From Macrostomum lignano (taxonomy: Eukaryota): a DNA stretch of 64,000 nucleotides. The notes under the pieces were generated by a model that was given only the letters and a program-made list of their open reading frames with translations, was not told the origin of the DNA and searched no databases. A program made the position numbers and the translations under genes. The stretch lies in NCBI GenBank assembly GCA_002269645.1, contig NIVC01000924.1, positions 62,001-126,000 on the forward strand, read 5' to 3'. How positions within the stretch are numbered: position 1 is the stretch's first letter; every line of letters starts with the position of its first letter. Positions 1,545 to 63,749 of this stretch are shown one piece after another.

Positions 1545-2230
1545 TCCTAGTCTCGGGCCCCTGTTAGAGTAACAAAAGTAACAAACAGCTATATTAACAA
1601 TAATAATAATTCGTGGAATAAATCAGTTATTACAGGTAATAAACACAGATAAGTATCAAGGGTCTCGCCTCGTTAAACCTCTGTAAAAATAATAACTTTA
1701 TGTACACTTCAGTTTTGAAGAGACAAAAAATCTAGCATGGCTAAAAGTTTTCTATTAATTATAAAAATCTAACGTTGGCCGCAAAAAATATATAACAAAT
1801 TTATAACAAAAATGAACAGGAAATTCGCGTCAACTTTTATTTTCAGATAAAAAAGCATACTAATAAACGCAAAAAGTACTTGCCTATTAGAGTGAATTGA
1901 GACAGTAGACAGATTGGATTTTTTGTTCAAATCAGGAGATTTGAGATTGAGAAGGAACAGATGAAAAAAATAAAGCATATTATAGAAGTGTACCTATGCA
2001 AGTTATTATAATACGTTATTTTACAATACATAGCTATATCAGTAGGCACTTTATTCATATAAAAGTAGCAAGCAACTAAAACAAAGAAGCGTAGTTAAAA
2101 AAATAAATTACGAAGAAAGTTTGCAAGCTAAACAATCCTGACAAATCTATCAGTTGAAACACGGAAGTCAACAGGCAATTAGGAACAATCATTTAGCTCG
2201 ATCGTGCGACAATGTTGGAGGTAGAAAGAG

Positions 2231-4590: not shown

Positions 4591-4993
4591 ATTTACTAAC
4601 TAATTTCAGGTGTAATTCCTAACTGAATATTGAGGGCCGATTCCTTACGATTTCCTATAAAATACTCATTACTATTAAGAAGCAAAATCTATATTAACGT
4701 TACAAGACCAATGCGGGACATGTTTATTTACCGATCACAGCTACTGTATTCAGAAGGCACTGAAAACTTGGTGACATAACAATTTTACAAATTAGAAGCA
4801 AAATTCAATAAGTAAAAACGCTTGAAAATTAAAAAGAAAGAAGAGCATCTCGGATCTCTGTCAAAGGGCTGATTTCAAAATTTTCATTTTGGCATTTTTG
4901 ACTTTCACGAAGTTGGGATAAACATGTACATCCCTGTCACCTGTAGGAGTCACCTGTTAACTGTTTTCGATTGAAGTTATTACAGACTGGTTG

Positions 4994-10503: not shown

Positions 10504-10657
10504 CAGTGGCGTAGCCAGGATTTCCTTCTGAGGGGTCACAGTCACAGGCTCACAGCGGCAACCGGGGGCAGGCAGGTGGTGCTAGGCCTCTGCGATGGGG
10601 AGGGGGGTGCTGAAAATTTGGCCTGGATCAGCCCCCCCCCCCTTGGCTACGCCCCTG
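10504..10657 (+). mobile_element. hAT-type MITE, family A copy 1 (154 bp)
   Basis: TIRs CAGTGGCGTAGCCAGG / CTTGGCTACGCCCCTG; 8-bp TSD GGTGGTAG / GGTGATAG (7/8). Confidence 0.85.
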
Positions 10658-12003: not shown

Positions 12004-12464
12004 CAGGGGTATAGCCAAGGGGGGGGGTCATAGGGATTATGACCAGTGGCAGATCTAGAGTTTCATTTTGGGAGAGGGGGTCCAAGTTTGGGGTGCCAAT
12101 GCAAGTATAAGGGGCACCAATTTTTAAGCTAGGGGGTGCCAAAATGTGTGTATGGTGGGAAAAGTCAAACTTAGGTGCATAAAAAAAGCATTGGGGAGGG
12201 GGCGAAAAATCAAGTTTAGGGGGCGCAAACTCAGGTTTTGGGGGGCACAATATGTTCTTTCAAGCTTTTTGGGGGGTGGCTGCCCCCTGCCCCCCTCCTA
12301 AATCCAACCCTGGTCATAACACCCAGCCTGCTGATCCAGGCCAAATTTTCAGCACCCCCCCTCCCCTGTCACAGAGGCCTAGCACCCTCTGCCCCCGGTT
12401 GCCACAGTGAGCCTATGACTATGACCCCCCCCCCCCCAAGAAAGAAATCCTGGCTATGCCACTG
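12004..12464 (-). mobile_element. hAT-type MITE, family A copy 2 (inverted relative to A1), nested in B1
   Basis: Reverse-complement homology to 10504-10657; TSD GGCACAAT / GGCACAGT (7/8). Confidence 0.85.
12044..12312 (+). mobile_element. hAT-type MITE, family B copy 2, nested in A2
   Basis: CAGTGGCAGATCTAG ... CTAAATCCAACCCTG; colinear with B1. Flanks ATTATGAC / GTCATAAC fit a decayed palindromic GTCATGAC target. Confidence 0.8.
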
Positions 12465-16400: not shown

Positions 16401-18001
16401 GAGGGTTAATAAACTGAGGGTTGATAAACTGAAGGTTGATAAACTGAGGGTTGATATACTGAGGGTTGATATACTGAGGGTTGATATACTGAGGGTTGAT
16501 AAACTGATAGTTGATAAACTGATAGTTGATAAACTGAGGGTTAAGTTGTAGCTGACTAGCAAGAATTTACGACTGTGTGAATTGTTTCGAGCTCGTGAAG
16601 CTTCGAGCTTGTGGAAGATTTCGACTTTCCAGGATGTGATATTTGTAATTCCGAGCTTATGAATGAATCGCATACCCCTATCCACAGAGCTACTCAGAAG
16701 CCAGCATAGACTTCTGGCCAACCTACAAATACGAGATTGGCAGTCAGAGATTCGACTCGGAGAAAGTTCGCGTGCCCAGCTGGTGTGACCGCATTCTCTA
16801 CCGAGCGGAGGATGTGCGCTGCGAGCCTCTAAAATATCGCAGTCAGCACAGTTATGTATACAGCGATCACAAACCGGTAACTTGCACATTCAACACCCAG
16901 GTGGCCAGAGTGGATGTTGAACGGCAGAAACGAACTATAAAACGTGGCGTGCAGTGGTTGGACTCGTTAGAGAATGCCGTACTGCCGCAGTGCACTCTGG
17001 AGCCCGGACACGAGGTGCAGTTTGGAGAGCTAAGCTTCTCTGATACTTATAGGGTGAGCTTCTCTGTTGCATTGATTTTTCCCTGCGGTTAGGGTAAGCT
17101 GCAAGGTGTGAACTAATCAAGGGTAATTAGATAAGCTACACAGGTGTGAACTAATCAAGGGTAATTAGATAAGCTACACAGGTGTGAACTAATCAAGGGT
17201 AATTAGATAAGCTACATAGGTGTGAACTAATCAAGGGTAATTAGATAAGCTACACAGGTGTGAACTAATTAAGGGTAATTAGATAAGCTACACAGGTGTG
17301 AACTAATCAAGGGTAATTAGATAAGCTACACAGGTGTGAACTAATCAAGGGTAAATAGATAAACTACACAGGTGTGAACTAATCAAGGGCTTAGATATGC
17401 TACACAGGTGTGAACTAATCAAGGGTAATTAGATAAGCTACACAGGTGTGAACTAATCAAGGGCTTAGATATGCTACACATTTCAGGCCACTTCAACGCC
17501 TCCTACCCCCCCCCCCCCACTAACCCAAACCAACCCAACAGGCCAGTCTGACCCTCCGCAACACTGGCCGGGTGTCAGCCAGCTGGCAGCTGATGCCAAC
17601 GCCTGGCGGCGAGTTCAGCGGCGTGCACGCCTCCCCGGTGGAGTCTCGCATCCCCATAGGCGGCAGCGAGACCATCATGCTGGACGCCACGCTGGGCCCT
17701 TGTCAGTGGCCGCAGGCGGTTCAGCGTTGGGCCGCCGGCAAGGCCGACTCAGCATTCGCCCCCGGCGACGTCCTCGTCATCGCCCTGATTGGCGGGCCGC
17801 ACATTTTTGCTGTGCCAAAGGGAGACATTGTGCCCAGCTGCTACGGCCTGCCTCTGGCCTGTCTGTGCCGGCTGAGGGAGCCCGTGCTCAAGACTGACCG
17901 GCAGAGCTTCAGGCGTCTGCTGAGGGACTGCTTGGAGTCCGCCAGCTCGTCTGAGACCTGCTCCAGTGAGTGACAGACAGACACACAGACAGACAGATAA
18001 A

Positions 18002-18076
<75 letters not shown>

Positions 18077-18176
18077 TAGAAGACAGACAGACAGACAGAT
18101 AGAAGACCGACAGACAGACAGACAGACAGACACACAGACAGATAGCAGACAGACAAACAGACAGACAGATAGACAC

Positions 18177-18209
<33 letters not shown>

Positions 18210-18224
18210 TAGACAGACAGACAC

Positions 18225-18317
<93 letters not shown>

Positions 18318-18456
18318 TAGAAGACAGACAGACAGACACACAGACAGACAGACAGATAGAAGACAGACAGACAGACAGATAGAAGACCGACAGACAGACA
18401 GACAGACAGACACACAGACAGATAGCAGACAGACAGACAGACAGACAGATAGACAC

Positions 18457-18489
<33 letters not shown>

Positions 18490-18556
18490 TAGACAGACAG
18501 ACACACAGATAGACAGACAGACAGACAGACACACAGACAGACAGACAGACAGACAC

Positions 18557-18589
<33 letters not shown>

Positions 18590-19329
18590 TAGAAGACAGA
18601 CAGACAGACACACAGACAGACAGGTAGACAGACAGACAGACAGACAGACAGGCAGGCAGACAGACAGACAGAGACTGCAGGTGTTTAAATCTAATAGAAT
18701 ACGCTGAATTGGAATATTCAACTTATTAGATGACGAGGAGACAGTGGCATTTACTAAAGCCGTTTACTCGAGATCATAAAAACTCGAATTCCCCCTTTGC
18801 AGACCTCGGGCCGCCCGTCCACCCGATCCCTGTCGAGGTCACCCGCCTGCTCGAGGCCACTGGGGACCCGGACTCGCCGCTGCTCCTGCCGGCCGACCCG
18901 TCAGAGGAGGACGCCTCGATGCCGTCCGACTCGCAGCTGGCCAGCATCGCCGACGCGCTCAGCCGTGGCGCCGAACTGCCGGCCAGGCTGCCGCCAGGCG
19001 CCATCCTGCAGGCGCTGCTGCTGCTGCTGCACATGCTGCCGGACAGGCCGCTACTGCCCGGGGCCAGGCAGAGCCAGCTGGCCCGCGACCTGCTGTCCCG
19101 CGTGTTCGCCTGGGCGAGGCGCCTGCTGAAGGGTCCGAATTGGCGCCACCGGGACGCGCTGGTGCTGAGGCTGGCGCGCGCACTGGACCGTCCGGTCGCC
19201 GGCTCTGCGCCACCATCGGAGGCAGCTATTCGGGAGGTACGGCGAGGACTTGAGCAGTCAGCAAACGGCGGTGCTCAGGGAGCTGCTCAGCCGCAGGCGT
19301 TCAGACAGCCGGATTTGATCCAGCTGTAG
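13484..19329 (+). CDS. OCRL/INPP5B: OCRL/INPP5B-type inositol polyphosphate 5-phosphatase with ASH and RhoGAP-like domains; exons 13484-14064, 15094-15607, 16688-17053, 17542-17965, 18803-19329; about 803 aa
   Basis: [45 protein letters not shown] and SDHKPV motifs; ASH-like LRNTG; C-terminal PIPVEV. Splice phases sum to an intact frame. Confidence 0.92.
14140..15050. repeat. 23+23-bp dimeric minisatellite (CCCATAAACTGTTTACAGAATCG / CCCATAAACTGTTTAGATATTCC) in OCRL intron 1
   Basis: Alternating units with a 46-bp higher-order period (14521/14567). Confidence 0.95.
15683..16543. repeat. 15-bp minisatellite (GATAAACTGAGGGTT) in OCRL intron 2
   Basis: Tandem units read directly. Confidence 0.97.
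17090..17480. repeat. 38-bp minisatellite (TAATCAAGGGTAATTAGATAAGCTACACAGGTGTGAAC) in OCRL intron 3
   Basis: Period 38 (17105/17143). Confidence 0.95.
17972..18675 (+). repeat. (GACA)n microsatellite in OCRL intron 4
   Basis: Starts immediately after the GTGAGT donor. Confidence 0.98.
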
Positions 19330-23994: not shown

Positions 23995-25928
23995 TCAGTA
24001 ATAATCCTCATCCTCATTCTGACCGCCGGCAGTGGCAGCGGCAGACTTGACCACCTCCTGGCTGCTGTACATCTCGGCCAGCTGGGCGGCCGTAGTCGCC
24101 TCCTCTGGCCGTTTGTCCTCGCGGCGGCGAACGAATCTGGGGAATCGGAGGCTGACGCCGCGGCGAGGGTCGGCCAGGCCGATGGCGGCCATGTAGGCGG
24201 GGCTGAGGCTCAGGTCGGCCGCCTTCACCTCCCAGACGATGGCCGGGTCGAACCAGACGTCGGCATTTGAAGCGCCGCCGCAGCGGACGTAGGGCTTCGG
24301 CGCGGCGACCCGGTGCTCGGCCAGGTCGCGGGTGAACGCGTCCAGATCTTCGTCGGAGAAGCCGGTGCCGATTTTGCAGACGGTCTGGTATTCTTCGTCG
24401 TCGGGATTGTAGCAGGCCAACAGGAAGCCCCAAGCTTGCCGGCCCGCTTCCCGGTGCCATGGTAACCACCGACAACCACGAGGTCGAGCGTGTCGCCAAC
24501 ACCGTCGACGTAGTCTTTTTTGAGCTTCAGCCAGCTGTGCGACCTGCGCGCGTTAAATTAATTGATTGATTTGCTTATTAGACTACTTATTAGATAAAGT
24601 TCGCGTGAGTAGGATGAAGAGCTTTGTGTCTAGGAATATTACTGCCAGTATGCGTGATAGGAAAAGCAGTTTAAAATCTGATACAAGCGTAAGAAGTGGA
24701 CACGGTAGATAGATGAGCTCGTAGTAGATCAGGTAAATAAGATAGATGTACATACATATGCTGACACTCATTTTTAGTATATTGGAAGTAGACAAGTTAT
24801 ACAGGTGACAAGTAGACAAGGTAGACAGATGAGAAGTAGACAAGGTAGATAGGTAAAATCAGATAGACAGGTGACAAGGTAGACAGGTGACACGGTAGAC
24901 AAGGTAGACAGGTGACACGGTAGACAAGGTAGACAGGTGACACGGTAGACAGGTGACACGGTAGACAGGGTAGACAGGTGACATGGTAGACAAGGTAGAC
25001 AGGTGACATGGTAGACAAGGTAGACAGGTGACATGGTAGACAAGGTAGACAGGTGACATGGTAGACAAGGTAGACAGGTGACATGGTAGACAAGGTAGAC
25101 AGGTGACATGGTAGACAAGGTAGACAGGTGACATGGTAGACAAGGTAGACAGGTGACACGGTAGACAGGCAATCCAGTGTTAAGTGTCTTGCTTAAGGGC
25201 ACAAATGGTTCCAAGTGGGTCGCGAATCGAACCTCCGACCTTTCAGTCGTAAGTCCGACGCTCTAACCACTAGGCTACAACCCCCAGGTAGTAGACCAGG
25301 TAGACAGGTGAGAAATAGACAAGGTAGACACATGATACTGTGCGCGCACCTCTTAGCAATCTCGTAGGTAGCCTCAGTGTCCAAGGCTTTAAGCATGAGT
25401 CCTTCGCAGTTTCCTCGAATAGCTTCATCCAGGAAGACCTGAATCTCCTCGGTGTCGGAGCAGTCCTGCCATTTGGCCAGGGCGAAGTGGCCCGCCTGCT
25501 CTGTCTCGGCAAAGTTGAACCCATCGCGCAGAACTTGGCGTCGCTGCCTTAATGATTTCTCAACCAGCGACTCGCCGTTGTAGTACAGAATGTCGAACAC
25601 AAACACGCACACCTGGACTTTGATTGAGCCCGCGTCAGCGTCTTTTCGCTTCCGGGTTGTTAGCACCTGGGGGGGGGTGCAGAAGGTGGAGTTTCTAAAG
25701 TCAAAAAAGGTATTAGCTAGTATGTAGCGCCACGAAAGTCAGGGTCACTGTGCACCCTGTGAGAGTGTGCGATTGCGTGCCTGCGTGCTGTATTGGCTGT
25801 CTGTCTGTCTGTCAGTCTGTCTGTCTGTGTGTCTGTGTGTCTGTCTGTCTATCTGTCTGTCATCTATCTGTCTGTCTGCCTGCCTGCCTGCCTATCTGTC
25901 TCTGTCTGTCTGTCTGTCTGCCTGCCTA

Positions 25929-25979
<51 letters not shown>

Positions 25980-28900
25980 GCCTATCCGTCTTTCTGTCTG
26001 TCTGTCTGTCCAGCTCACCTGGAAAGGCAGTATCTGTCGCTTCTCCGTATCGAAGGCCACAGCTTCAGCATCCAATATGAAGTCAACCGGCTCACGGCCA
26101 GCCAGCAGGTCGGGCACCCTGGCGGCGATGTCCGGGTACTTGCTGGTGTTGTTCTCCTGATTGCGCGAGTACACCCGAACGGAGCCGTCTGACAGACGGT
26201 GAATCTGAGCGCGCTCGCCGTCGTATTTGAACTCGCAGGTGAAGGCGCCGACGCTTTCGAATCGTTTGAGCACCTCTGCGACGCCGCGGGTTGGATGGGC
26301 CAGCATGGGCTTGAGGGGCAGGCCGACTTGAAGCTGACAGCGAGACAGAAGGCCGGACAAGTCGCCGGAGCTGCAGGGGGTCGAGTATGGAGTTCGAGCA
26401 TTGTTATTGATCGAAACAAGATCAAATTGGCAAATCAATTTCATCTTTTCTACGTTTTTTAACAATAAAAAATTGTTATGGAAAACCAGGTGGCTCTCGT
26501 AGCTTTGCCGATAGTAATAAACTTGTTTTCTGAGAACGCAATACGTTAAATTTTCAAGAATTATTTTAATTAATTAAAAATTCTTTTTCTAAGAAAACAC
26601 TTCCCATTTTCTAATAAACCTCTTCCTGTTTTCTAAGAATCCACTTCTCGTTTTCTAAGAATCCACTTCCTATTGTCTTATAAACCACTTCTCGTTTTCT
26701 AAGAATCCACTTCCCATTTTCTAATAAACCTCTTCCTGTTTTCTAAGAATCCACTTCCCGTTTTCTAAGAATCCACTTCCCGTTTTCTAAGAATCCACTT
26801 CCCGTTTTCTAAGAATCCACTTCCCGTTTTCTAAGAATCCACTTCCCGTTTTCTAATAAACCACTTTCCGTTTTCTAAGAATCCACTTTCCGTTTTCTAA
26901 TAAACCACTTTCCGTTTTCTAAGAATCCAATTACCGTTTTCTAAGAATCCACTTCCCGTTTTCTAATAAACCACTTTCCGTTTTCTAAGAATCCACTTCC
27001 CGTTTTTTAATAAACCACTTTCCGTTTTCTAAGAATCCACTTCCCGTTTTCTAATAAACCACTTCCCGTTTTCTAAGAATCCACTTTCCGTTTGCTAAGA
27101 AACCACTGTTGTACTTTTGTTTTCTAAGAAACGGTTTAATTGTTTTCCAAGATCTCATCCATTAGACCCTCCACAGAAACTTCTTAAACCAATAGTCCCG
27201 CTTTCTAAGAATTCTGTTTTAACGTCTAAGAATTCAAATGCCTTAAACAGGCTCACCAGTCTTCATCCCGAGTCTCCTCAAGCAGAGCGGCAACCAGCAA
27301 GTCATAATTGGGGCAGCGGCAGTAGGCGGTCCGCACTAGCAGAGCCGCTTCGTCTTGGCGTCGTTTCCAAGAATCCGCAGATTGTCCACGCGAAGCGTCC
27401 GGAGTTTTCAAATTCGGCGACCGGACAAAAGCATGGCCGAGAGCGGACAGGACGGAGAGCTCGGCCAGGCCGATTCTGAGACGACCGGACAAAGATCGGA
27501 TGAGGTATTTGGCTTCGCACTGGCGACAGGAGACTAGCAGGGATTGAATTTTTGACACCTGCGGGTTTTGTAAGAAACTTTGATGTGACAATTAACCACC
27601 ACAAATAGTCAACTCTATTACTAGCTGTGAGCCTACATTAGATACCACAGATGAGTAATTAGCTACCAAAGATACCACAGCTGAGTAATTAGCTACCAAA
27701 GATACCACAGCTGAGTAATTAGCTACCAAAGATACCACAGGTAGATAATTAGCTACCATAGATACCACAGGTAGATAATTAGCTACCATAGATACCACAG
27801 CTGAGTAATTAGCTACCAAAGATACCACAGCTGAGTAATTAGCTACCAAAGATACCACAGCTGAGTAATTAGCTACCAAAGATACCACAGGTAGATAATT
27901 AGCTACCATAGATACCACAGCTGAGTAATTAGCTACCAAAGATACCACAGGTAGATAATTAGCTACCATAGATACCACAGGTAGATAATTAGCTACCATA
28001 GATACCACAGGTAGATAATTAGCTACCATAGATACCACAGGTAGATAATTAGCTACCATAGATACCACAGGTAGATAATTAGCTACCATAGATACCACAG
28101 CTGAGTAATTAGCTACCAAAGATATCACAGGTAGATAATTAGCTACGATGGATACCACAGGTAGATGATTAGCTACGATGGATACCACAGGTAGATACTC
28201 GTAATTAGCTACCATATAGATACCACAGGTAGATGATTAGCTACGATGGATACCACAAGTAGATAATTAGCTATCAAAGTTACTGGTAGGTGTTAAGCAC
28301 CTTCTTCTGCTGCGCGGCATTCCCAGAGAGATCGGCCACCTCGCGTAGCCGCTGAAATACGCCGGCAACAGTCAGAGGTTTCGGCTGGCACATCACAGCT
28401 TGACGCGAACGTAGCGACTCGCTCACTGCGCCAAGATCGCCGACAACTTGAGCACGTTGGCGAATTTTATCTACAGTAGAGCCGGTGCTCAAAGCCATGG
28501 CTTTTATCAGCACGGAGTCACCGACGCCCAGTTCAACAGCCTCGTAAGCTGGCGCCAACTGATTCAAGCACAGATAGACGCACGGCAGCAAATCTTTAGG
28601 GCTGAGCAGACGAACTGAACGAAGAAAATTGCATAGCAACTCTAAGATTCTTAACCGGCCAGGCGTGGCCTCGATGGCTTCGAATGTTTTGGCCAGAGCC
28701 AAGTAGGGCACCGGCTGGCCGCTCGACCAGCTCGCATCCTCTATGGGATCGTAGCGAGCTTTGCCGGGATTATAACCCGATTCTTCCTTCGGCTGCTGCT
28801 CAGACGGCGCTTCAGCTGCTGTCTTCTTCTCCTGGTCCGATTTTTCAACCTCTTTTACTTCGGCGGCGATTTTGTTTGCCTGCTTCTTTTCCGGCTTACT

Positions 28901-29626
28901 TGTTGCAGATTTTTTCCTGGCTACTTTCGATTTTGCGTCAGATTTCGGTTTTGTGTCAGAGTTCGGTTTTGTGTCAGAGTTCGGTTTTGTGTCAGATTTC
29001 GGTTTTGTGTCAGATTTCGACGGTTTCGGTTTCAATTTAGATTTGCTTTTATCGGAAGCAGATTCGGAAGCGGCAGATTCGGAAGATGACGAGGAGGAAA
29101 TCATTCGGCGACGCTTGGCAGGCGGAGATGGAGAATCCTGTTGTTGCTGAGGCGACGACAAAGACTCATCGTTGGATTCAGAATCAGAGGAACCGGACTC
29201 AGACTCAGCCTTCTTTCGCTTGTTCCGCTTGTCTTGTTTATCTGGCCTATCTAAAGACAATTTATTTTCTTTCTTAATTGTCGAAGTCTCCGCTTTCGAA
29301 GTCGGCGACTTCACCTTCGCGTCGGTAGTAGTCTTTGTTGGCGGTGTGGTCGATAAAGGGCGTCGAGTACTATCGGTGATAATAGTACTACTATCTGACT
29401 GTGCCGCAGAAGAGGCGGCAGTTTTCGAGAAGAAAGAAGTGATGGAACGTTGTTGCTGCTTCTGGCTTCCATTTTGCTGTTGCGGCATTGCGCAGGGCGA
29501 GTTTAAGATAGATAGTATTGACGTTGTTCGTACAAACAATGGGCTTGAGCAATGAAGGAAAACAGCCGACACACCTTTCTGACGTATTAAGGATGGCGCT
29601 AGTAACGTTAATAAACGAGGTAGCAT
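23995..29626 (-). CDS. LIG1: DNA ligase I; exons 29626-28301, 27558-27257, 26370-26019, 25666-25350, 24543-23995; 1-nt frameshift at 24428-24431; about 948 aa if corrected
   Basis: PIP box [28 protein letters not shown], adenylation motif [26 protein letters not shown] and OB-fold SLRFPRF. Exon lengths sum to one base short of a multiple of 3. Confidence 0.93.
24800..25165. repeat. 25-bp minisatellite (GTAGACAAGGTAGACAGGTGACATG) in LIG1 intron 4
   Basis: Period 25 (25021/25046). Confidence 0.95.
25168..25285 (-). mobile_element. tRNA-derived SINE fragment in LIG1 intron 4
   Basis: Minus strand GGGGGTTGTAGCCTAGTGGTTAGAGCGTCGGAC...GGTTCGATTC (A and B boxes), then a non-tRNA body GTGCCCTTAAGCAAGACACTTAAC resembling a widespread SINE central domain (recalled, not searched). 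Confidence 0.8.
25796..26010 (-). repeat. (GACA)n microsatellite (CTGT on +) in LIG1 intron 3
   Basis: Read directly. Confidence 0.97.
26575..27100. repeat. 22-bp minisatellite (TTTTCTAAGAATCCACTTCCCG) in LIG1 intron 2
   Basis: Period 22. Confidence 0.95.
27640..28275. repeat. 30-bp minisatellite (GATACCACAG[GTAGATA/CTGAGTA]ATTAGCTACCA[T/A]A) in LIG1 intron 1
   Basis: Period 30, two interspersed variants. Confidence 0.96.
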
Positions 29627-33958: not shown

Positions 33959-34818
33959 TTAATTTGCGGCGTCGGTCCCTTCGGCCCCGGGAATTGTTAC
34001 GGCGTCGACAGTTCCAGCGTCCCTCGATCGTCTGGCGGCCGCAGCGGACGCCGTGTTGACGTTAACGGCGTTGGTCGCCGCGTCGCTACTTGACAATCGT
34101 TGCTGCTTTTTGCTGCTTAATTTTTTCTTACCACTTGCTAACAATTGCCGGTAGAAGTCTGAGCGCAGGAATCTGCCGTAGGAGTCGGACTTCATCAGCT
34201 GAAATATGTGCTCCTCGGCCGCTTCGAATGCGTAACGATCAGCTGAGGCGGCTGTAGCGCTGGACATCCGTTTTCGGACAGCTTCGGCCACCGGGCCGGC
34301 CACGTTGACCGGCTCCGTAGCGTCCGGTCCAAGGAAGGTGTCGTAGATCCGATTGACCTCCTTGTGTACCTGACTGGCCGGGGCGTGGCGCAACCGTTGG
34401 CAGGCCTCCCAGAAGGCCAAATTCTCGGCGCTAACCTCTTTTAGTAGCCATTTCTCGAATTCCTGCCGGCCAGCCGGGTCGCGCAGCAGCTCGTGAATGC
34501 TGAAGCCCCAGCGCTTCACCCGCCTAGCCGGGACGTCCCGGGTTCGACGCTCAGATTCCCAATAGTCGGCGCTGTCCGATACCCACGGATTCTGGCTCTG
34601 GTCGGGCAGGCCGCCGCCAATGAATGCGTCAAATTCGGCATACTGCTGATAGTAGCATATGGCGCTCTCGGCCGCTTTGGACACTTTCACGCGACTGAGA
34701 GGGGGCGGGCGTTTGGAATCGGTGCCGCGATTGCCTCATTTCTGGTATACGAACTGGGCCTCACTGTCTTAGTGTCTGTCTGTCTGTCTGTCTTAGTGTC
34801 TGTCTGTCTGTCTTAGTG

Positions 34819-34871
<53 letters not shown>

Positions 34872-37800
34872 TAGTGTCTGTCTGTCTTAGTGTCTGTCTG
34901 TCTTAGTGTCTGTCTGTCTGTCTTAGTGTCTGTCTGTCTTAGTGTCTGTCTGTCTTAGTGTCTGTCTGTCTTAGTGTCTGTCTGTCTGTCTTAGTGTCTG
35001 TCTGTCTGTCTTAGTGTCTGTCTGTCTGTCTTAGTGTCTGTCTTAGTGTCTGTCTGGCTGTCTGTCTGTCTGTCTGTCAGCCGGTCTGTCACCTGAGACT
35101 AACTCACCGCCTAGCCAGTGCCTGCCGCAGTTTGTCAGCCTTCGCGGCTGGCTCACACGGCTCCACGGGACTGAGCCGGCCGCTCGGTATGGGGAAGGTG
35201 GCGGGCCTGGTGGCCACCTTCTTTGGCCGTTTAGCCCGGCACAGCTTGCGCATGTCGACCTCCGTGGCCACGACTGCGCCAGGCGGCGGCCTGTAGAGCA
35301 GCCAGAAGCCGCGCTCCTGACTCTCCAGCACCATGCGCTCGAGCCGTTCCAGCTTCCTGCACAGGTTGAGAGTGGCGGATAGAATGATTAATTAGCGTGT
35401 CTGTGGTGGTGTCTTTTGCAGTATCCGTTGTAGTGTCTGTGGTTGTGTCTGTGGTAGTGTCTAGTAGTGTCTGTGGTAGTGTCTGGTAGTGTCTGGTAGT
35501 GTCTGGTAGTGTCTGTTGTAGTGTCTGTTGTAGTGCCTGTGGTAGTGTCTGCTGTAGTGTCTGTGGTAGTGTATGTTGTAGTGCCTGTGGTAGTGTCTGG
35601 TAGTGTCTGTGGTAGTGTCTGGTAGTGTCTGTGGTAGTGTCTGGTAGTGTCTGTTGTAGTGTCTGTTGTAGTGCTTGTGGTAGAGTCTGTGGTAGTGTCT
35701 GGTAGTGTCTGTTGTAGTGTCTGTGGTAGTGTCTGTTGTAGTGCTTGTGGTAGTGTCTGGTAGTGTCTGTGGTAGTGTCTGTGGTAGTGTCTGTGGTAGT
35801 GTCTGGTAGTGCCTGTGGTAGTGCCTGTGGTAGTGTCTGTGGTAGTGTCTGTGGTAGTGTCTGTTGTAGTGTCTGTTGTAGTGCCTGTGCTAGTGCCTGT
35901 AGTAGTGTCTGTGGTAGTGTCTGTGGTAGTGTCTGTGGTAGTGTCTGTGGTAGTGTCTGTTGTAGTGTCTGTTGTAGTGCCTGTGGTAGTGTCTGTTGTA
36001 GTGCCTGTGGTAGTGTCTGTGGTAGTGTCTGTGGTAGTGTCTGGTAGTGCCTGTGGTAGTGCCTGTGGTAGTGTCTGTGGTAGTGTCTGTTGTAGTGCCT
36101 GTGCTAGTGTCTGTTGCAGTGCCTGTTGTAGTGTCTTTGGTAGTGTCTGTTGTAGTGCCTGTGGTAGTGTCTGTTGTAGTGTCTGTGGTAGTGTCTGGTA
36201 GTGCCTGTGGTAGTGCCTGTGGTAGTGTCTGTGGTAGTGTCTGTTGTAGTGCCTGTGCTAGTGTCTGTTGCAGTGCCTGTTGTAGTGTCTTTGGTAGTGT
36301 CTGTTGTAGTGCCTGTGGTAGTGTCTGTTGTAGTGTCTGTGGTAGTGTCTGGTAGTGTCTGTTGTAGTGTCTGTTCTAGTGTCTGGTAGTGTCTGTTGTA
36401 GTGCTTGTGGTAGTGCCTGTGGTAGTATCTGTGGTAGTGTCTGGTAGTGTCTGTGGTAGTGTCTGGTAGTGCCTGTGGTTGTGTCTGTTGCAGTGTCTGT
36501 TGTAGTGCCTCTTGGTGTCTGTTGTGTGTCCTAGTGTGTTTCAGTGTCAAACTTGTTGTCTGTGAATGTCGCTATGTATTAACAATATAATCCACGTGGT
36601 ATATTTGCAATTGAACACCGAAACACACACATACGCAATTTGCACTTTAGTCGCCCTAACTAAAGAGAAATAAAGGAAGTTACTCTAAAAAATTCAAACT
36701 AATATCTCTGCCACATTTGCTTGACAGACGAAAATCCTCTACTAAAAAATTTACAGACCGCTCGTAAGCAGAACAGAGGGCACTAAAAGCACAGCTGCTA
36801 CCCGTAAATGCACAGAACAATTTTATGTATTTAGGAATTAGAAAATTATTTTCAAAGCTGTCCGCTGCGTGACTAACGGGCCGGTCCATTGTTCCGGACT
36901 GCTGGCCCATGATAAGCGCAGAGGCGCCGCTGTCTCTCTTGCAACCCAAACTGCCAACTCCGATGCGACACTGTGAGAACTGCTGTCAATATCAGAGCTC
37001 AACTGGGTGCGAATATGCCTCTGATGTCTGCATATTGAGCAGCTGGAGGCGCAACTACTGATAATGTAAGCTGAGTGGCTGCTGCACCTGGGTCTGGGAG
37101 GGCGGTGGCTGAGCCTGGGATTTGGGAGGGCGGTGGCTGAGCCTGGGGTCTGGGAGGGCGGTGGCTGAGCCTGGGATTAGGGAGGGCGGTGGCTGAGCCT
37201 GGGGTCTGGGAGGGCGGTGGCTGAGCCTGGGATTTGGGAGGGCGGTGGCTGAGCCTGGGGTCTGGGAGGGCGGTGGCTGAGCCTGGGGTCTGGGAGGGCG
37301 GTGGCTGAGCCTGGGGTCTGTGAGGGCGGTGGCTGAGCCTGGGAGGGTAGTGGCTGAGCCTTGAGTCTGGGAGGGCGGTGGCTGAGCCTTGGGTCTGGGA
37401 GGGCGGTGGCTGAGCCTTGGGTCTGGGAGGGCGGTGGCTGAGCCTTGAGTCTGGGAGGGTGGTGGTTGAGCCTGGGGTCTGGGAGGGCGGTGGCTGAGCC
37501 TTGGGTCTGGGAGGGCAGTGGCTGAGCCTGGGAGGGTAGTGGCTGAGCCTTGAGTCTGGGAGGGCGGTGGCTGAGCCTGGGAGGGTAGTGGCTGAGCCTT
37601 GAGTCTGGGAGGGCGGTGGCTGAGCCTGGGAGGGTAGTGGCTGAGCCTTGAGTCTGGGAGGGCGGTGGCTGAGCCTTGGGTCTGGGAGGGTGGTGGCTGA
37701 GCCTTGAGTCTGGGAGGGCAGTGGCTGAGCCTGGGAGGGTAGTGGCTGAGCCTTGAGTCTGGGAGGGTGGTGGTTGAGCCTGGGGTCTGGGAGGGCGGTG

Positions 37801-38793
37801 GCTGAGCCTTGGGTCTGGGAGGGCGGTGGCTGAGCCTGGGGTCTGGGAGGGCGGTGGCTGAGCCTGGGGTCTGGGAGGGTGGTGGCTGAGCCTTGGGTCT
37901 GGGAGGGTGGTGGCTGAGCCTTGGGTCTGAGAGGGCGGTGGCTGAGCCTGGGAGGGTAGTGGCTGAGCCTTGAGTCTGGGAGGGCGGTGGCTGAGCCTGG
38001 GGTCTGGGAGGGCGGTGGCTGAGCCTGGGGTCTGGGAGGGCGGTGGCTGAGCCTGGGAGGGTAGTGGCTGAGCCTTGGGTCTGGGAGGGCGGTGGCTGAG
38101 CCTGGGGTCTGGGAGGGCGGTGGCTAAGCCTGGAGTCTGGGACGGTGGCGGTGGCCCAATAATTTGGCCTCATTTACGTGGAACTAAGATGATAGAGCTT
38201 GGTAATTCTACAATCCAAAAGATCCATTGTAACAAAAATAAAGCCGAAATCAGCTTTACCTATCAACCTTAGCCTCGGCCTCCGCCTGCAGGTAGATAAA
38301 CTCCCATTTGTGAGACAGTAGGCGCTGCAGCCTGGCCAAATTCTCAGCCTCATAATTGGCCAATTCCAATCGCTGCTTATTGAGCAGTGTTCGCTTGCAC
38401 AGGTAGACAGCATAGTCAGTGTTGTCCAGCCGATCTGGTGATTTACTGGGCCACAGGCAGGGCGTTTGAAATCGATAATAGGAAGAATCGTTGCGTACAA
38501 CCAGAGCCGTGCCTTCGACTGGGATGATGTAACCGTGAGCTGCCAGCATGCTGGCCACGTGACAGGCCTCCTGCGGTAATGGTCGGATCGGATAGTCATT
38601 AGTTAGCTAGTAGCTCGCATGTGTTTAGCAAATTGAATAAAAATTGACTGCTGCTACTGGTAGTAGCACTACCTACCTAGCCCAAGGCACTACCAACACT
38701 AATATTACTAAAACTACAACAAATATTACTACTAATAGTCCAAGTAATACTGCTAATAGTACACTACTAGCACTACTACTACTGCTACTACTG

Positions 38794-38831
<38 letters not shown>

Positions 38832-40316
38832 GTCTCCAAGTGAGAGGGAGTGAGAGGGAGTGAGAGGAAGCGAGAGTGAGAGAGTGAGAGGAAGCGAGAG
38901 TGAGAGAGTGAGAGGAAGCGAGAGTGAGAGGGACTGAGAGGAATCGAGAGGGAGTGACGGAGAGAGTGAGGGAGTGACGGAGAGTGAGAGAGAGTGACGG
39001 AGAGTGAGAGGGAGTGACGGAGAGTGAGAGGGAGTGACGGAGAGTGAGAGGGAGTGACGGAGAGTGAGAGGGAGTGACGGAGAGTGAGAGGGAGTGACGG
39101 AGAGTGAGAGGGAGTGAGAGGAAGCGAGAGGGAGTGAGATGGAGTGAGAGGAAGCGAGAGTGAGAGGGAGTGAGAGGGAGTGAGATGGAGTGAGAGGAAG
39201 CGAGAGTGAGAGGGAGTGAGAGGAAGCGAGAGGGAGTGAGAGGAAGCGAGAGGGAGTGAGATGGAGTGAGAGGAAGCGAGAGGGAGTGAGAGGGAGTGAG
39301 AGGAAGCGAGAGTGAGAGGGAGTGAGAGGAAGCGAGAGGGAGTGAGATGGAGTGAGAGGAAGCGAGAGTGAGAGGGAGTGAGAGGAAGCGAGAGGGAGTG
39401 AGATGGAGTGAGAGGAAGCGAGAGGGAGTGAGAGGGAGTGAGAGGAAGCGAGAGTGAGAGGGAGTGAGAGGAAGCGAGAGTGAGAGGGAGTGAGAGGAAG
39501 CGAGAGTGAGAGGGAGTGAGAGGAAGCGAGAGGGAGTGAGATGGAGTGAGAGGAAGCGAGAGGGAGTGAGAGGAAGCGAGAGTGAGAGAGAGTGAGAGGA
39601 AGCGAGAGGGAGTGAAAGTGAGAGGAAGCGAGAGGGAGTGAGAGGGAGTGAGAGGAAGCGAGAGGGAGTGAGAGGGAGTGAGAGGAAGCGAGAGTGAGAG
39701 AGAGTGAGAGGAAGCGAGAGTGAGAGAGAGTGAGAGGAAGCGAGAGGGAGTGACGGAGAGTGAGAGGGAGTGAGAGGAAGCGATCGAGGGAGTGAGAGGA
39801 AGCGAGAGGGAGTGAGAGGAAGCGAGAGTGAGAGAGAGTGAGAGGAAGCGAGAGTGAGAGAGAGTGAGAGGAAGCGAGAGGGAGTGACGGAGAGTGAGAG
39901 GGAGTGAGAGGAAGCGATCGAGGGAGTGAGAGGAAGCGAGAGGGAGTGACGGAGAGCGTAGAGGGAAAGACTCGATATGCCCTAACCTGAGCATCCTCTG
40001 CATCGGTGTTACGCAGAAGCCAGCCGCACAGCTCCGACCCAGTGAAACAAGACGGCTGACAGGACATAAAGGATTTAACAGTGCGCACAGAGATGCCTGC
40101 GTCTTCCTGTTGTAGCCGTTCTAATAGTCGCTCTAGTCGGGACCATTGGTAAGCGTTGGGATGCGGCGGGCGGCCAGCCTCAGTGGTGACTGGTGCTGTT
40201 TTTGCTTTAGCGTGTCTGGCGTGGTGTCGCATTACTGAGGTGGATGTTGCACTGCTGCTGCTGCTGCTGCCAGCACTGCCGGAGCTGCAGGCAGCCTGAG
40301 TCTGTTGCTGCTGCAT
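33959..40316 (-). CDS. RGS7: R7-family regulator of G-protein signalling (RGS6/7, EGL-10-like; DEP-DHEX-GGL-RGS); exons 40316-39987, 38570-38260, 35356-35108, 34694-33959; about 541 aa
   Basis: DEP (GISVRTVKSFMS...FTGSELCGWL, AAHGYIIPV, YYRFQTP), DHEX (NTDYAVYLCKR, SQERGFW), GGL (RVKVSKAAES...EFDAF) and RGS box (WGFSIHELLRDPAG, SAENLAFWEAC, LMKSDSYGRFLRS). Phases consistent; the 5' end could extend further. Confidence 0.92.
34765..35078 (-). repeat. (GACA)n-type microsatellite with TTAGTGTCTG interruptions in RGS intron 3
   Basis: Read directly. Confidence 0.95.
35400..36530. repeat. 10/12-bp minisatellite (GTAGTGTCTG[TG/TT]) in RGS intron 2
   Basis: Read directly. Confidence 0.96.
37075..38145. 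repeat. G-rich 28/21-bp minisatellite (CTGGGAGGGCGGTGGCTGAGCCTGGGGT) in RGS intron 2
   Basis: Period 28 (37141/37169) with a 21-bp deletion variant. Confidence 0.96.
38760..39957. repeat. (ACT)n microsatellite followed by a 1.1-kb GA-rich polypurine compound repeat in RGS intron 1
   Basis: ACT run about 38760-38830; GAGAGGAAGC/GAGAGGGAGT/GACGGAGAGT modules 38842-39957. Confidence 0.95.
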
Positions 40317-42401: not shown

Positions 42402-42692
42402 CATACATGTGCAAACCTCCAAAATTTGGTTGGCCATGTGACAGATCTAACAAAAATGTGACATAGTTTTTGGCCAAAAATGTGACTTACATGTAAAAAA
42501 CTTGAAGCAAAATTAATGCAACTTTGGGTAAACGGCGGGAGTAACTATGACTGTCCTATTAAATCAAAATGCCTCATCAGCTACTTAGAAATACTACTTG
42601 GGGTTTTGGGTGGGCATTTTTGCAACTTACCTAGTTGGCCACCAAATCAATCAGCCGGATTGGCCGACTTGGCCGACTGTTGCGCATGTATG
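42402..42692 (+). mobile_element. Small TIR element (MITE-like) carrying a 28S rRNA fragment, copy 1
   Basis: Ends CATACATGTGCAA / TTGCGCATGTATG; colinear homolog split across 61235-61329 and 63166-63345. Confidence 0.7.
42502..42588 (+). pseudogene. 28S rRNA-derived fragment (helix 69 / R2-I-PpoI target region), not a functional rRNA gene
   Basis: 42526-42552 GGGTAAACGGCGGGAGTAACTATGACT matches the universally conserved LSU sequence (from memory) at 27/27; after a correctly sized 14-nt spacer, AAATGCCTC...TTAG matches 19/22. Confidence 0.85.
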
Positions 42693-46858: not shown

Positions 46859-48387
46859 ATAGATAAATTCATGTTTTACTAATAACATATACATATAAGA
46901 AATTATCAATAAAAGTAATTATCAATAGAAATTATTAGAAATTATTAAGAAATTATCAATAAAAGTACAAGCACTATATGAGGAAGGGCTCTTGTAATAC
47001 AATATAAATGCTTTTGTTTCTACATTTTGTTTCTTAGAAAACTCTCTTTCAAATTCGCACAAAAATATGATTACTTTGTTTAAATGTTGTGAGTTATGAA
47101 AATATTCTCAAGATTTATTTTTGTTAAAAATTGTATCGAATCTTAGTATAAATAGAAGCCCTGGGTGGGCCAAGAAGACCAACTCATTTGTGTGCTCTAG
47201 CAATAGCTAAAACTTGATAAGAAAATTGTTCAAAGTGACTTATTCATTTCTATAGTAAAAACCCCTATATTGGGAGAGTTCCAGACCACTAATAGCAAGA
47301 AATCGCCTCAGGGCAGTAATTGTAAATTTGCTTCAGGGTAGGAGAACCGCCTCATAGCGAGAGAAGATTGTCTCAGGGCAGGGAAAGTATAAAGCTATGA
47401 CCCTCTGATCCTAGGAATGCCAGGACTGAGAGATATAAGAGTAGACAATGCCAATAGACTGCTCAGGCAAAAGGTACAGTACATTTACAACTGCTACCAT
47501 TAGATAAGTAGACGCTATCAATATAAGTAGATAAGTAGATGCTACCAATATTAGTAGTACATTTATGAAAAAGTACATTAAGTAGAGAGACAGAATTAAC
47601 AGACTTGCAACAACTTTGGTGGCAGCAACACAAGAATAATTAAGAGCCTTGGGACAGCTTTTGGTGGCATTTAGTGGGATTAAAATTGATAAAGCAGGAA
47701 GGAACACCACTAACACAGCTTGGTATCTTAGCGGTGAGATTCTCAGTATACAGGGAACACCACTAGCACATATAGGAGCTATAGCACAACCTTTGTGGCA
47801 GTTTGTGAGATTTCCTAGTGTATAGGAAACATGCCTATAACAACTTGGTGACAGCTATAGAATCATTTATAAAGACAGAAGAAAACCTTAGTTACATATA
47901 TTACAAATACTTTGGTATAAAATATTTTTTTGTAAAAATAAACAAGATAAAGTAGATTTACAAGTATTTTCAAAAAAAATTATTATAATTATACTATACC
48001 ATATTCTATGCTATCAAGCTATTCTATAGCAACTTATGCCATTATGCTATATACCTAAATGCACATTGATATATCCATTTTTGGCCAAACAAAAATGCAT
48101 GTATCATTTTTTGGCAGATGTATGCCAGAATTGTCTAGCATGATATATACCTTGTAGAGTATAATATAATGATGAAAATAAAAGGAAAAACTGTCTTTTA
48201 GTATAGTAGATATAATCTTGAGCTAGTAACTAACTTTGTATACTATCAAATTTAAATATGATAATATCATAGTTATCAATATTCACATAGTAACAAATCT
48301 TGAACTTTTTAAGATCTTATAACCAAGATTAAGGTTTAAAAAGTGCCAAGATCTTGATGATCAAGATCAAGATCTTATTTGACTCCT

Positions 48388-56522: not shown

Positions 56523-58294
<1,772 letters not shown>

Positions 58295-61050: not shown

Positions 61051-61537
61051 GTTAAAAGTTTCTATAAGTTATACCCTAGAGAACTGCACTAAATTGCTCA
61101 CAACTCTTGAATGCCTTCTATACACTACTTTGCATCTTGGACTCTGGCTTACTATAATAGAACTAGGATTTACCTAGTCATGATCATTATTATAAACAAA
61201 GAGATTAATTAGGCATTTATTTATTTAGGCAAATCATACATGTACAACCCCCTGATTTACACTGGCCATGCAATTTACTTTTTGACCAAAAATGCAACTT
61301 ACCTATGAAAGAAACCCTGAAGCAAATTATGTTACCCTTGCCACTGTGTTGGTGGTAAGGGCGTTTAAACTGCAAGGGGAGGGGCTCGCTTGGCTGGGGC
61401 GGGTGCGTGCAGGGTGGCGTGTGCTGCGGGGGGCGGGGGGTCGCGGGGGTGCTAGCTTGATTTCTATTTAGTCCGGTCCTTTGCTTGTTCGCCGTGCGTT
61501 CGTGTTTGCTCAGATTTTTTTCTCAGCCACAATCAAT

Positions 61538-62623
61538 ATGGCCACCTCTAGTCAGCTGCAATCAGTCACCAATCTGAGCGTGCCTCAACTAAAGACGGCA
61601 TTGCAAGCGCGCAAATTACCAACAAAAGGTAGCAAGGCTGCCCTACGTACTTGTCTGTGCGACGCGATTCTCAACAAGCGTCTAGCTGCTGACACCGCGA
61701 ACAGGACTTCCCACAGGGAGCCACCGTGGGATTCTGACGGCTCGTCCAATGGAGGGAGCAGCCGGCGGTCCAAGGGGGGTGGCACCTCTTTGGGTGGCGC
61801 GGCTCTGGATGAGGAGATCCAGCTCACCCGATGGCGCATTGAACTGCTAAGGCTGCAGAAAGAAGAGGCGGAGCTGCAACGGTCGGTGGATAAGGCACCA
61901 GATAATCGCGGTAAGCTACCAGAATTTTTGAGCCAGTCTGCTTGCGCTGAGTCTGATAGGTGGTCCAATGATAGTGAACTTGATGCTGCTATTTTTGCTC
62001 CAAGCAACGCTAGAGTTATATCCGGGTGGCTGCTTCGTATTTGCGACTTCATTGATGCCCCTGGCCAGGCTGACGAGCTTCTTGCGCAGGGTGAGACAGC
62101 CAAGCAGAATCTCAAGAGCAGTAGACCAAAATCTGTAGACTCTGTGACAGTCGGCCAATGGATTTCTGCCAATGCTAAAATTATGTATGCCATGCTGCAA
62201 TCCGGACAGCTAGCGTCTCACGACACCGATAGTGAGCCAAAAAGTCTCTTGGACTACTTGCAGCACGTTATCCACATCGGCGATTTGCTTGATGGGGGGT
62301 ACGACTGGCAAGTCCTTCTTCGTTATGATGACGACCTGCATAAGTTCCAGCATGCAAACGCCTCCAAGTGGTCCCAGCCGCCTTTGTCTTTGATTTGTAA
62401 GCACCTTATGGCCCCAAAGAACCTTCATAGTCGGCAAGCCAGCCAGACTGGCCGCGGAGGCCGCCAACAATTCGCTTCGCGAGGCCAAGCGGTCTGTGGA
62501 CTGTTTAACAGCGCTACCGGATGTCAGAGAGACACCTGCAACTATCTGCACTGCTGTCGGATTTGTGGTGGCTCACATGCTGCTGCTAGCCACACCAACC
62601 ATGCTAATCAAGCAAAAAACTGA
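61538..62623 (+). CDS. Gag-like ORF1 with N-terminal SAP motif and C-terminal zinc-finger-like cluster (361 aa from ATG 61538)
   Basis: LSVPQLKTALQARKLPTKGSKAAL (SAP-like); WQVLLRYDDDL; CGLFNSATGCQRDTCNYLHCCRICGGSH. Confidence 0.75.
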   Translation: MATSSQLQSVTNLSVPQLKTALQARKLPTKGSKAALRTCLCDAILNKRLAADTANRTSHREPPWDSDGSSNGGSSRRSKGGGTSLGGAALDEEIQLTRWRIELLRLQKEEAELQRSVDKAPDNRGKLPEFLSQSACAESDRWSNDSELDAAIFAPSNARVISGWLLRICDFIDAPGQADELLAQGETAKQNLKSSRPKSVDSVTVGQWISANAKIMYAMLQSGQLASHDTDSEPKSLLDYLQHVIHIGDLLDGGYDWQVLLRYDDDLHKFQHANASKWSQPPLSLICKHLMAPKNLHSRQASQTGRGGRQQFASRGQAVCGLFNSATGCQRDTCNYLHCCRICGGSHAAASHTNHANQAKN

Positions 62624-63168
62624 GAGAAGCGTCGCATGCAGATTCCATCGCCTGCGACGCCTTCTCTTTTAACTTCCTGCCTGCCCGCGACATCGCCCAA
62701 CCTGCCTGCCTGCCTGCCTCCGACGTCGTTCAACCTGCCTGCCTGCCTGCCTCCGACGTCGCTCAACCTGCCTGCCTGCCTGCCTCCAATGTCGCTCAAC
62801 CTGCCTGCCTGCCTGCCTCCGACGTCGCTCAACCTGCCTGCCTGCCTGCCTCCAACGTCGCTCAACCTGCCTGCCTGCCTGCCTCCAACGTCGCTCAACC
62901 TGTCTGCCTGACTGCCTCCGACGTCGCTCAACCTGCCTGCCTGACTGCCTCCAATGTCACTCAACCTGCCTGCCTGCCTGGCTCCGATGCTACCAAACCT
63001 GCCTGCTTGTCGGCCTCCGTCATCGACCCTGCCTACTGGCTAGCTAACGACTGTCCTCCGGTCAATCCCCGTCAGTGCAGCGACCTCGTCGTGGCTGTCT
63101 GGGAGGAGCGTCTTTGTGGAGATCCGGATAAGAATTTCCTTGTTGACAGTCTTCGTGCTAGTTTTTGA
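62608..63168 (+). CDS. Pol-like ORF2 N-terminus in the -1 frame (186 codons, no own ATG; missed by the ORF track)
   Basis: Stop-free from 62608 to TGA 63166-63168; contains about 9 QPACLPASDVA repeats, then YWLANDCPPVNPRQC... Confidence 0.65.
   Translation, partial: SSKKLREASHADSIACDAFSFNFLPARDIAQPACLPASDVVQPACLPASDVAQPACLPASNVAQPACLPASDVAQPACLPASNVAQPACLPASNVAQPVCLTASDVAQPACLTASNVTQPACLPGSDATKPACLSASVIDPAYWLANDCPPVNPRQCSDLVVAVWEERLCGDPDKNFLVDSLRASF
62614..62667 (+). promoter_or_regulatory. Predicted -1 ribosomal frameshift signal: A_AAA_AAC slippery site plus 14-bp hairpin
   Basis: Heptamer 62614-62620 is in X_XXY_YYZ phase directly before the ORF1 TGA; stem 62623-62636 pairs with 62653-62667 (one C bulge). 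Confidence 0.7.
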
Positions 63169-63749
63169 AGCAAATTAACACAATTTTTGATAAACAGCAG
63201 GAGTACCTATAACCTTATTATAAAGGGCTAAATGCCTTGTCATCTAATTAGTACTACATCTGTATTCTTTGGGGTGGGAATTTTTGCGACTTATCCCTGG
63301 TCTACCACAATTTACAATGGCCAAGTTGGCTAGCAGTTGCACATGGGGAAATCCAAAAATCGGGGGCAAGTTTTATGAAAATTCGTTTTTTGGCAATTTG
63401 AAAGCAATAAAGCTATAAAATAAATTTATTCAAGTTTTTAAAAAGTAAAAAAGTCTATTAAAGCACAAATTATTTTCGTATAGCTTTATTTTTAATAAAA
63501 TGATTTGTTAAAACGGTAAGTTTAATTACGACCTAAAATGAGTCTAATGAAAATGATTGAAAAGCTATAATAATGTATTTTATTAACTTTAACTATATTA
63601 TAATGTTACACTCTATAATTCTACAACATATTTAACATTATTTTAAGGTTTTATTTGTTTATCACTTTCGTTACTCTTGACAACGTGTATTTTGTAGAGT
63701 TCGTTTGCAATAAATTGTATTCAACGTAAGTTTATTATTTAAACATACA

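Follow-up and report, generated by a model that had tools for sequence, protein, structure and literature searches.

How does a piece of the 28S rRNA gene come to lie inside a short repeat outside rDNA in the flatworm Macrostomum lignano, and does it do anything there? The window, that is, the whole stretch of 64,000 nucleotides analysed here, had been given a first-pass annotation made from its letters. This described a DNA-transposon derivative that captured the 28S target region of R2, I-PpoI and Pokey and spreads it outside rDNA, where it would serve rDNA-specific elements as a landing pad or decoy, or would give rise to small RNAs that match rRNA.

Ends and copies of the element

The unit had been described as 291 bp long with 13-bp inverted ends, together with a second copy at 61235-63345. 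The sequence that had been quoted from it was found in place, and the inverted ends were confirmed, 12 of their 13 positions being complementary. The second copy also exists, but it is split by an insert of 1836 bp that had been overlooked. The features of the two copies are as follows.

42402-42692 (+): copy 1 of the MITE-like element, uninterrupted, 291 bp, homologous to copy 2 from end to end
42402-42414 (+): left terminal inverted repeat (TIR) of copy 1, CATACATGTGCAA
42680-42692 (-): right TIR of copy 1, reading TTGCGCATGTATG on the + strand, complementary to the left TIR at 12/13 positions
42430, 42470 (palindromic with 42472), 42635, 42660 and 42669: subterminal TTGGCC motifs, candidate transposase-binding repeats
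61235-61329 (+): left arm of copy 2, with its left TIR CATACATGTACAA at 61235-61247, ending in the first 12-bp repeat
61318-61329 (+): left copy of a 12-bp direct repeat, TGAAGCAAATTA, within the 28S-like core
61330-63165: insert separating the arms of copy 2
63166-63177 (+): right copy of TGAAGCAAATTA, a perfect match to the left one
63178-63345 (+): right arm of copy 2, in which the 28S-like core runs to 63251

The two copies lie 19 kb apart in the same orientation. With the insert removed they aligned end to end at approximately 70% identity, the left terminus being common to both at 12 of 13 positions and the right terminus over TTGCRCATG (9/10 over its inner part). The right inverted end of copy 2, TTGCACATG, occupies 63337-63345, conservation being lost over the final 4 nt of the terminus. 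The homology ends at the inverted termini: the 200 bp beyond each end were dissimilar between the copies, with alignment scores of 12 and 17 compared to approximately 11.7 +/- 1.8 for shuffled sequences. On each side of the 28S-like core the copies have about 100 bp of non-28S sequence in common. Identity was 71% and 69% in these arms and 67% in the core. The first-pass annotation would have given up its reading if the inverted ends had not been shared and only two copies existed; the ends are common to both copies, and two copies are all that the window holds.

A search of the 64-kb window for further copies by blastn and with a two-copy nhmmer profile returned only one marginal match of 50 bp. 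This match, at 48075-48124 on the minus strand, may be the heavily decayed left arm of a third copy, belonging to this family or a related one, or may be due to chance (nhmmer E = 0.3). It has a TIR-like CATACATCTGCCA followed, approximately 35 nt on and at roughly the correct spacing, by TTTGGCCAAAAATG, and it is without a 28S-like core and without a right end. Two family-specific sequence blocks, used as patterns, gave no matches in a metagenome collection, and a scan of a viral collection was likewise empty; neither collection is expected to contain flatworm DNA.

The TTGGCC motif is strongly concentrated in copy 1. Its 291 bp contain 6 of the 40 matches in the whole window where 0.18 would be expected (P ~4e-8), an enrichment of about 30-fold; the motifs lie near both ends, and some are kept in copy 2. 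Together with the short inverted termini, these repeats resemble transposase-binding ends and are candidates for such a role. The element has no coding capacity, neither copy 1 (291 bp) nor copy 2 (about 263 bp) containing an ORF, and no transposase ORF or autonomous partner was detected in the 64-kb window. A poly(A) or A-rich tail is absent from the element. At gathering score Rfam gave no matches across the window, and the element has no tRNA-, 5S- or 7SL-like head. Apart from the pairing of the ends, DNA folding of the element was unremarkable (z = -2.05).

Copy 1 is flanked by ATATT/CATAC on the left and GTATG/TAAAT on the right, and copy 2 by GCAAAT/CATAC, the slash marking the edge of the element. 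No clear target-site duplication surrounds copy 2 and no convincing one surrounds copy 1: AAATAT occurs on both sides of copy 1 only when the ends are moved by 1 nt, in an AT-rich context. The ends of the element are not flanked by a TTAA duplication.

The 28S-derived core and its target site

Two features of copy 1 are needed for the analysis of the rRNA-like part.

42503-42588 (+): 28S rRNA-derived core of copy 1, about 86 bp, from the helix 69 to the helix 71 region
42553-42566 (+): degenerate counterpart of the R2/I-PpoI/Pokey target, GTCCTATTAAATCA compared to CTCTTAAGGTAGCC in 28S, 8 of 14 positions changed

The corresponding core of copy 2 consists of 61318-61329 and 63178-63251. By cmscan, 42473-42594 aligned with positions 2200-2312 of the Rfam model LSU_rRNA_eukarya (16.5 bits, E=0.11). 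The score is below the gathering score, as is expected for a fragment of about 90 nt against a model of 3.4 kb. Within this match, the 27 nt of GGGTAAACGGCGGGAGTAACTATGACT (42526-42552) are identical to the model consensus, which occurred in none of 100 shuffles and for which about 6e-12 occurrences are expected by base composition. Copy 2 did not match the LSU model even in E-value mode, and it was therefore compared with the consensus by pairwise alignment. Aligned locally to the Rfam consensus, copy 1 scored 45 and copy 2 scored 33, compared to 8.8 +/- 1.3 for shuffled sequences. Thus, the 28S match of the first-pass annotation is borne out by the Rfam alignment, by the exact 27-nt run and by scores approximately 18-27 standard deviations above shuffles, and on these alignments we regard the 28S homology in both copies as real.

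According to the structure line of the model alignment, a stem-loop, GGGAGUAACUAUGACUCUC, lies inside the LSU match. This stem-loop is helix 69, after which comes CUCUUAAGGUAGCC, the site for R2, I-PpoI and Pokey. A weak extension of the homology leftward to 42473 is suggested by cmscan. Local alignment to a longer 28S stretch gave no homology past approximately 42503-42588. When copy 1 was compared with a phage collection by blastn, its core matched bacterial records annotated as 23S (87.5% over 32 nt), an uninformative result.

A three-way alignment of both copies with 28S indicates how the core arose. Copy 1 has 27 of 27 28S bases in the upstream block, and copy 2 has 21 of 22 in the downstream block. 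As each copy retains 28S bases that the other has lost, their ancestor was nearer to 28S than either copy is today. Both copies also depart from 28S in the same way: an additional C follows GAAG, GCGC has become YTTT, and the R2 site is occupied by a patch that contains TAT. These shared derived changes point to a single capture of 28S sequence, and the common non-28S arms of about 100 bp exclude two independent rDNA scraps.

The element was said to carry the R2/I-PpoI/Pokey target. The corresponding region is indeed carried, but the 14-nt CTCTTAAGGTAGCC itself is intact in neither copy, copy 2 reading CTTATTATAAAGGGCT at this position. In copy 1, 8 of the 14 target positions are changed compared to 3 of 49 in the flanking, universally conserved 28S positions; such clustering has a probability of ~1e-5 at the flanking rate and of 3e-3 at the rate of copy 2. 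As the patch is partly common to both copies, the site was probably already broken in their common ancestor. That the damage is so sharply confined to the R2/I-PpoI site is the one feature that is still odd.

The identity of the core between the copies (67%, compared to 69-71% in the arms) indicates no extra constraint on the 28S part. Of 11 substitutions in the conserved 28S blocks, 4 are transitions at the three CpG sites located there, and this share of CpG transitions is a pattern of passive decay. We thus consider the 28S piece a likely passenger with no sign of function, and a functional role is not supported. All three CpG sites in the blocks 42526-42588 and 63192-63251 are changed (CG>CA or CG>TG) in one or both copies; they hint at CpG hypermutability of the genome, in a tiny sample.

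The insert in copy 2

The insert lies within the 28S-like core of copy 2 and has the following parts.

61330-63165 (+): insert, 1836 bp, 5' part of a DIRS/Ngaro-like tyrosine-recombinase retrotransposon, with a GC-rich leader, ORF1 and the start of ORF2
61538-62623 (+): ORF1 of the insert, 361 aa, intact, gag-like, with a SAP domain (E 5e-7) and a C-terminal Cys/His motif
62608-63165 (+): ORF2-like open frame, cut off at the 3' edge of the insert
62676-63019 (+): 33-bp tandem repeat, 10.4 copies, within the ORF2-like frame

The sole relative of ORF1 found among 5.8 billion proteins was P0001, from an ENA metagenome contig (32% identity, E 2e-23). ORF1 is also homologous to the ORF1 of the element L002 (E 6e-13). 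In both relatives, the last 27 aa of the ORF2-like frame can be aligned with the beginning of ORF2, immediately ahead of the reverse transcriptase, and in L002 ORF2 runs on into RVT_1 (E 2.5e-13). ORFs further downstream in L002 have weak but correctly placed matches to Phage_int_SAM_4 and Phage_integrase (E ~0.08) and an HxxR...Y-type motif. L002 (6858-10637 of a 530-kb contig, ENA ERZ25084522) and L001 are related, apparently complete DIRS/Ngaro-like elements on long eukaryotic metagenome contigs, each with a gag-like ORF, RVT_1 and a probable tyrosine recombinase. Judged by this homology, the insert is the 5' 1.8 kb of a DIRS/Ngaro-like retrotransposon and not an R-element, the assignment to the DIRS order resting on the relatives L001 and L002 while the insert itself comprises ORF1 and the first residues of ORF2 only. 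The R2-like insertions for which the first-pass annotation had proposed to look at the copies are therefore not what is found: in the two copies inspected, this fragment is the sole insertion. The 33-bp repeat (90% matches) keeps the reading frame and gives the second ORF an N-terminus with PACLPASDVAQ-like units.

With its gag-like ORF1 followed by ORF2, which in the relatives continues to RVT_1 and a probable tyrosine recombinase, the insert resembles DIRS/Ngaro-like elements. It differs from them in that it comprises the first 1.8 kb only and is flanked by a 12-bp duplication. Canonical integration of the DIRS1 type creates no target duplication (PMC3266345). The 12-bp duplication and the presence of a 5' fragment only thus indicate a non-canonical event, which may have been a template switch in the course of repair or the uptake of a fragment into a staggered break. 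The point of insertion corresponds to the 28S position between GAAGAAATT and C, approximately 40 nt upstream of the R2 site. Copy 1 is colinear with 28S across the point at which copy 2 is split, indicating that the uninterrupted form is ancestral and the split form derived. The same colinearity through the junction rules out a reading in which copy 2 is a DIRS-like element with inverted ends that has suffered an internal deletion and copy 1 has arisen from it by deletion. With an intact ORF1 and a GC-rich sequence in an AT-rich setting, the insertion looks much younger than the element that it interrupts.

Origin of the repeat, related elements and genomic setting

Taken together, we think it fairly probable that a MITE-like repeat, with a piece of 28S carried outside rDNA, is present here as two old, diverged copies. 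The copies (~70% identical) would belong to a short non-autonomous DNA transposon of Macrostomum, mobilised by a transposase that is encoded elsewhere and recognises the termini of about 13 bp and the subterminal TTGGCC motifs. Before the copies separated, the element would have gained a 28S piece of 86 bp, possibly about 120 bp, in its middle, perhaps by template switching or by filler capture during break repair, as is usual for DNA transposons. The R2/I-PpoI site would have been scrambled in the common ancestor, and the 28S piece would then have decayed at the rate of the rest of the element until, later, copy 2 presumably gained the 1836-bp 5' retrotransposon fragment in its 28S-like part together with a 12-bp target duplication. 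Direct repeats around the core were considered as signatures of capture and rejected as too short and too AT-rich.

As expected of a MITE, the TIRs lie at the exact limits of the repeat, and the unit is small and non-coding; it is present in two copies in 64 kb. It has neither a Pol III-type head nor an A-rich or LINE-derived tail, the marks of a SINE, nor the TTAA of Pokey and piggyBac. The shortness of the TIR, the degenerate right tip of copy 2, the limitation to two copies and the failure to find a convincing target-site duplication or an autonomous partner were counted against the MITE reading. The annotated notion of a DNA-transposon derivative that holds a 28S hotspot outside rDNA thus stands as far as the shared inverted ends and the single capture are concerned, but the hotspot site is degenerate.

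Descent from a DNA transposon resident in rDNA, a flatworm counterpart of Pokey, would be an unlikely alternative. The 28S piece would then have been trapped between two nearby insertions or taken from the rDNA unit, and the patch at the target would have been left behind by repair, or favoured by selection as resistant to cutting by site-specific nucleases. The clustering of changes at the target in copy 1, partly shared with copy 2, agrees with such an origin, as does a weak TIR-like TACATGTAAAAAACT directly left of the core, and Pokey, with its pieces of rDNA derived from IGS and ITS2, offers a precedent (PMC3849761). However, the ends of the Macrostomum element are without TTAA or any other specific flank, the inner TIR-like match covers only 12 of 15 positions in AT-rich sequence, and two copies are too few to reconstruct the ancestral patch. 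In a slightly more doubtful form of this idea, the family would be the remnant of a flatworm DNA transposon living in or beside 28S rDNA, in which the scrambling was a repair scar or a selected 'immunity' change against site-specific nucleases or retrotransposons. If this were true, the scrambled site would document how mobile elements have fought over a single rDNA hotspot.

It is similarly unlikely that the unit is not mobile at all, but an rDNA pseudogene scrap copied with its surroundings by local segmental duplication, the inverted ends having arisen by chance. The presence of only two copies, 19 kb apart and in the same orientation, the lack of a clear target-site duplication and the scarcity of other dispersed repeats in the window are consistent with this. 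Yet in copy 1 the homology is bounded by a 12/13 inverted repeat, whose left terminus is also the left limit in copy 2, TTGGCC clusters occur in both arms, and a divergence of about 30% combined with unrelated flanks is contrary to what a segmental duplication predicts.

That the unit belongs to some other type of repeat, for instance as a solo LTR, as a SINE or as the terminal part of a larger element, is less likely still. The size would fit an LTR or a SINE, and TG...CA can be read within the ends (TGTGCAA...TTGCGCA). However, the bases outside TG...CA are inverted, not direct, and are common to both copies; a poly(A) or A-rich tail and a head resembling tRNA, 5S or 7SL are both lacking, as is any Rfam match at gathering score; and the arms occur nowhere else in the window. 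Solo LTR, SINE and Helitron readings were ruled out on the structure of the ends.

Finally, a role as landing pad or decoy for rDNA-specific elements (R2, Pokey-like elements, homing endonucleases), or as the origin of small RNAs that match rRNA, as the first-pass annotation had suggested, appears highly improbable: the fragment spans the hotspot region, one of two copies has an insertion within the 28S-like core and flatworms host R2 lineages (PMC5035012), but the cut site is scrambled in both copies, apparently since their ancestor, the core has diverged as fast as the arms, and the insertion is a DIRS/Ngaro-like fragment, not specific to rDNA, that lies about 40 bp upstream of the R2 site in a core that makes up about one third of the element and so lends no weight to the idea.

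The MITE-like reading can be set beside several known systems in which mobile elements carry rDNA-derived sequence. A 2024 review lists 5S-derived SINE heads, Cassandra, Ajax, SINE28 (28S) and the IGS repeats of Pokey/mPok (PMC10946416). Elliott et al. described an ITS2-derived piece in Pokey and showed that Pokey uses a single TTAA of 28S, flanked by sequence that agrees with its preferences in the genome (PMC3849761), and Kojima et al. reported seven R2 families with a 28S-like stretch in the 3' UTR (PMC5035012). The statement of the first-pass annotation that no equivalent had been described was therefore too strong in view of Pokey/mPok (PMC3849761), SINE28 (PMC4994717) and the R2 3' UTRs (PMC5035012). 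Literature searches turned up neither a TIR element that contains a fragment of the 28S gene nor any MITE described from Macrostomum.

Pokey/mPok of Daphnia (piggyBac superfamily) comes close as a DNA transposon and MITE family with sequence derived from the rDNA unit (PMC3849761; PMC10946416), and its 28S insertion site falls in the very region of 28S that the Macrostomum element carries. The passengers of Pokey, however, are derived from IGS and ITS2 and not from the 28S gene, and Pokey creates TTAA duplications and inserts into 28S, whereas the Macrostomum element is not flanked by TTAA, differs in its terminus and gives no evidence of residence in rDNA. Mammalian SINE28 (PMC4994717) is likewise a short non-autonomous repeat whose body is derived from 28S rRNA; it is a retroposon, whereas the Macrostomum element has inverted termini, subterminal repeats and no A-tail and is 28S-derived in its middle third only. 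The R2 families with a 28S-like 3' UTR have also acquired a piece of 28S from near the R2 site, which was kept internally and diverged. In contrast to the Macrostomum element, they are autonomous non-LTR retrotransposons residing in rDNA, and their 28S-like piece comes from downstream of the insertion site. The piece described here spans the site and lies within a TIR element outside rDNA.

Transduplicating DNA transposons of the Pack-MULE type capture fragments of host genes. The Macrostomum element resembles them in that it is non-autonomous and encloses part of a host gene between TIRs, and copy 2 holds a second foreign fragment flanked by a short duplication. It differs in that it contains only one short rRNA fragment, the mechanism of whose capture we infer.

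If the family is confirmed genome-wide, a DNA-transposon example with a 28S gene fragment would be added to the short list of elements with rDNA-derived parts, which comprises 5S-headed SINEs, SINE28, Cassandra, the spacer repeats of Pokey and the R2 3' UTRs. Such elements account for dispersed rRNA-like matches outside rDNA and can confuse the mapping of rDNA, R2 and small RNAs in a repeat-rich model flatworm. With two decayed copies and a broken target site, the family has no evident biological role, and its value lies mainly in repeat annotation.

The window has a GC content of 42%, with 29-37% across most of 40-56 kb and 48% at 56-58 kb, and its intergenic DNA is AT-rich. The genes recognised in it are listed below, all having been identified by reading their translations and LIG1 confirmed by a protein match.

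6344-6817 (-): casein kinase 1-like gene
13484-15685 (+): phosphatase-like gene
25193-29626 (-): DNA ligase 1 (LIG1)
33959-40316 (-): RGS/DEP-domain gene
57959-58243 (-): 14-3-3 gene

The long LIG1 exon (28280-29626, minus strand) matches M. lignano DNA ligase 1 with 98% identity, the next-best matches being molluscan (52-59%). Copy 1 is set in AT-rich sequence with few genes, approximately 2 kb away from where the RGS-like gene has its 5' end. Many long arrays of mini- or microsatellites are present, at 2212-4650, 6842-8164, 16044-16889, 17749-18721, 27592-28215, 37055-40003 and 56909-58182, several of them in or beside genes, where they give rise to long spurious ORFs. A different repeat of 130-140 bp, starting CAGTGGCGTAGCCAGGATTTC, forms an inverted pair at 10504-10632 and 12330-12464; its two members are 83% identical and about 1.8 kb apart, and each might be a MITE copy, or the two together the long termini of another transposon.
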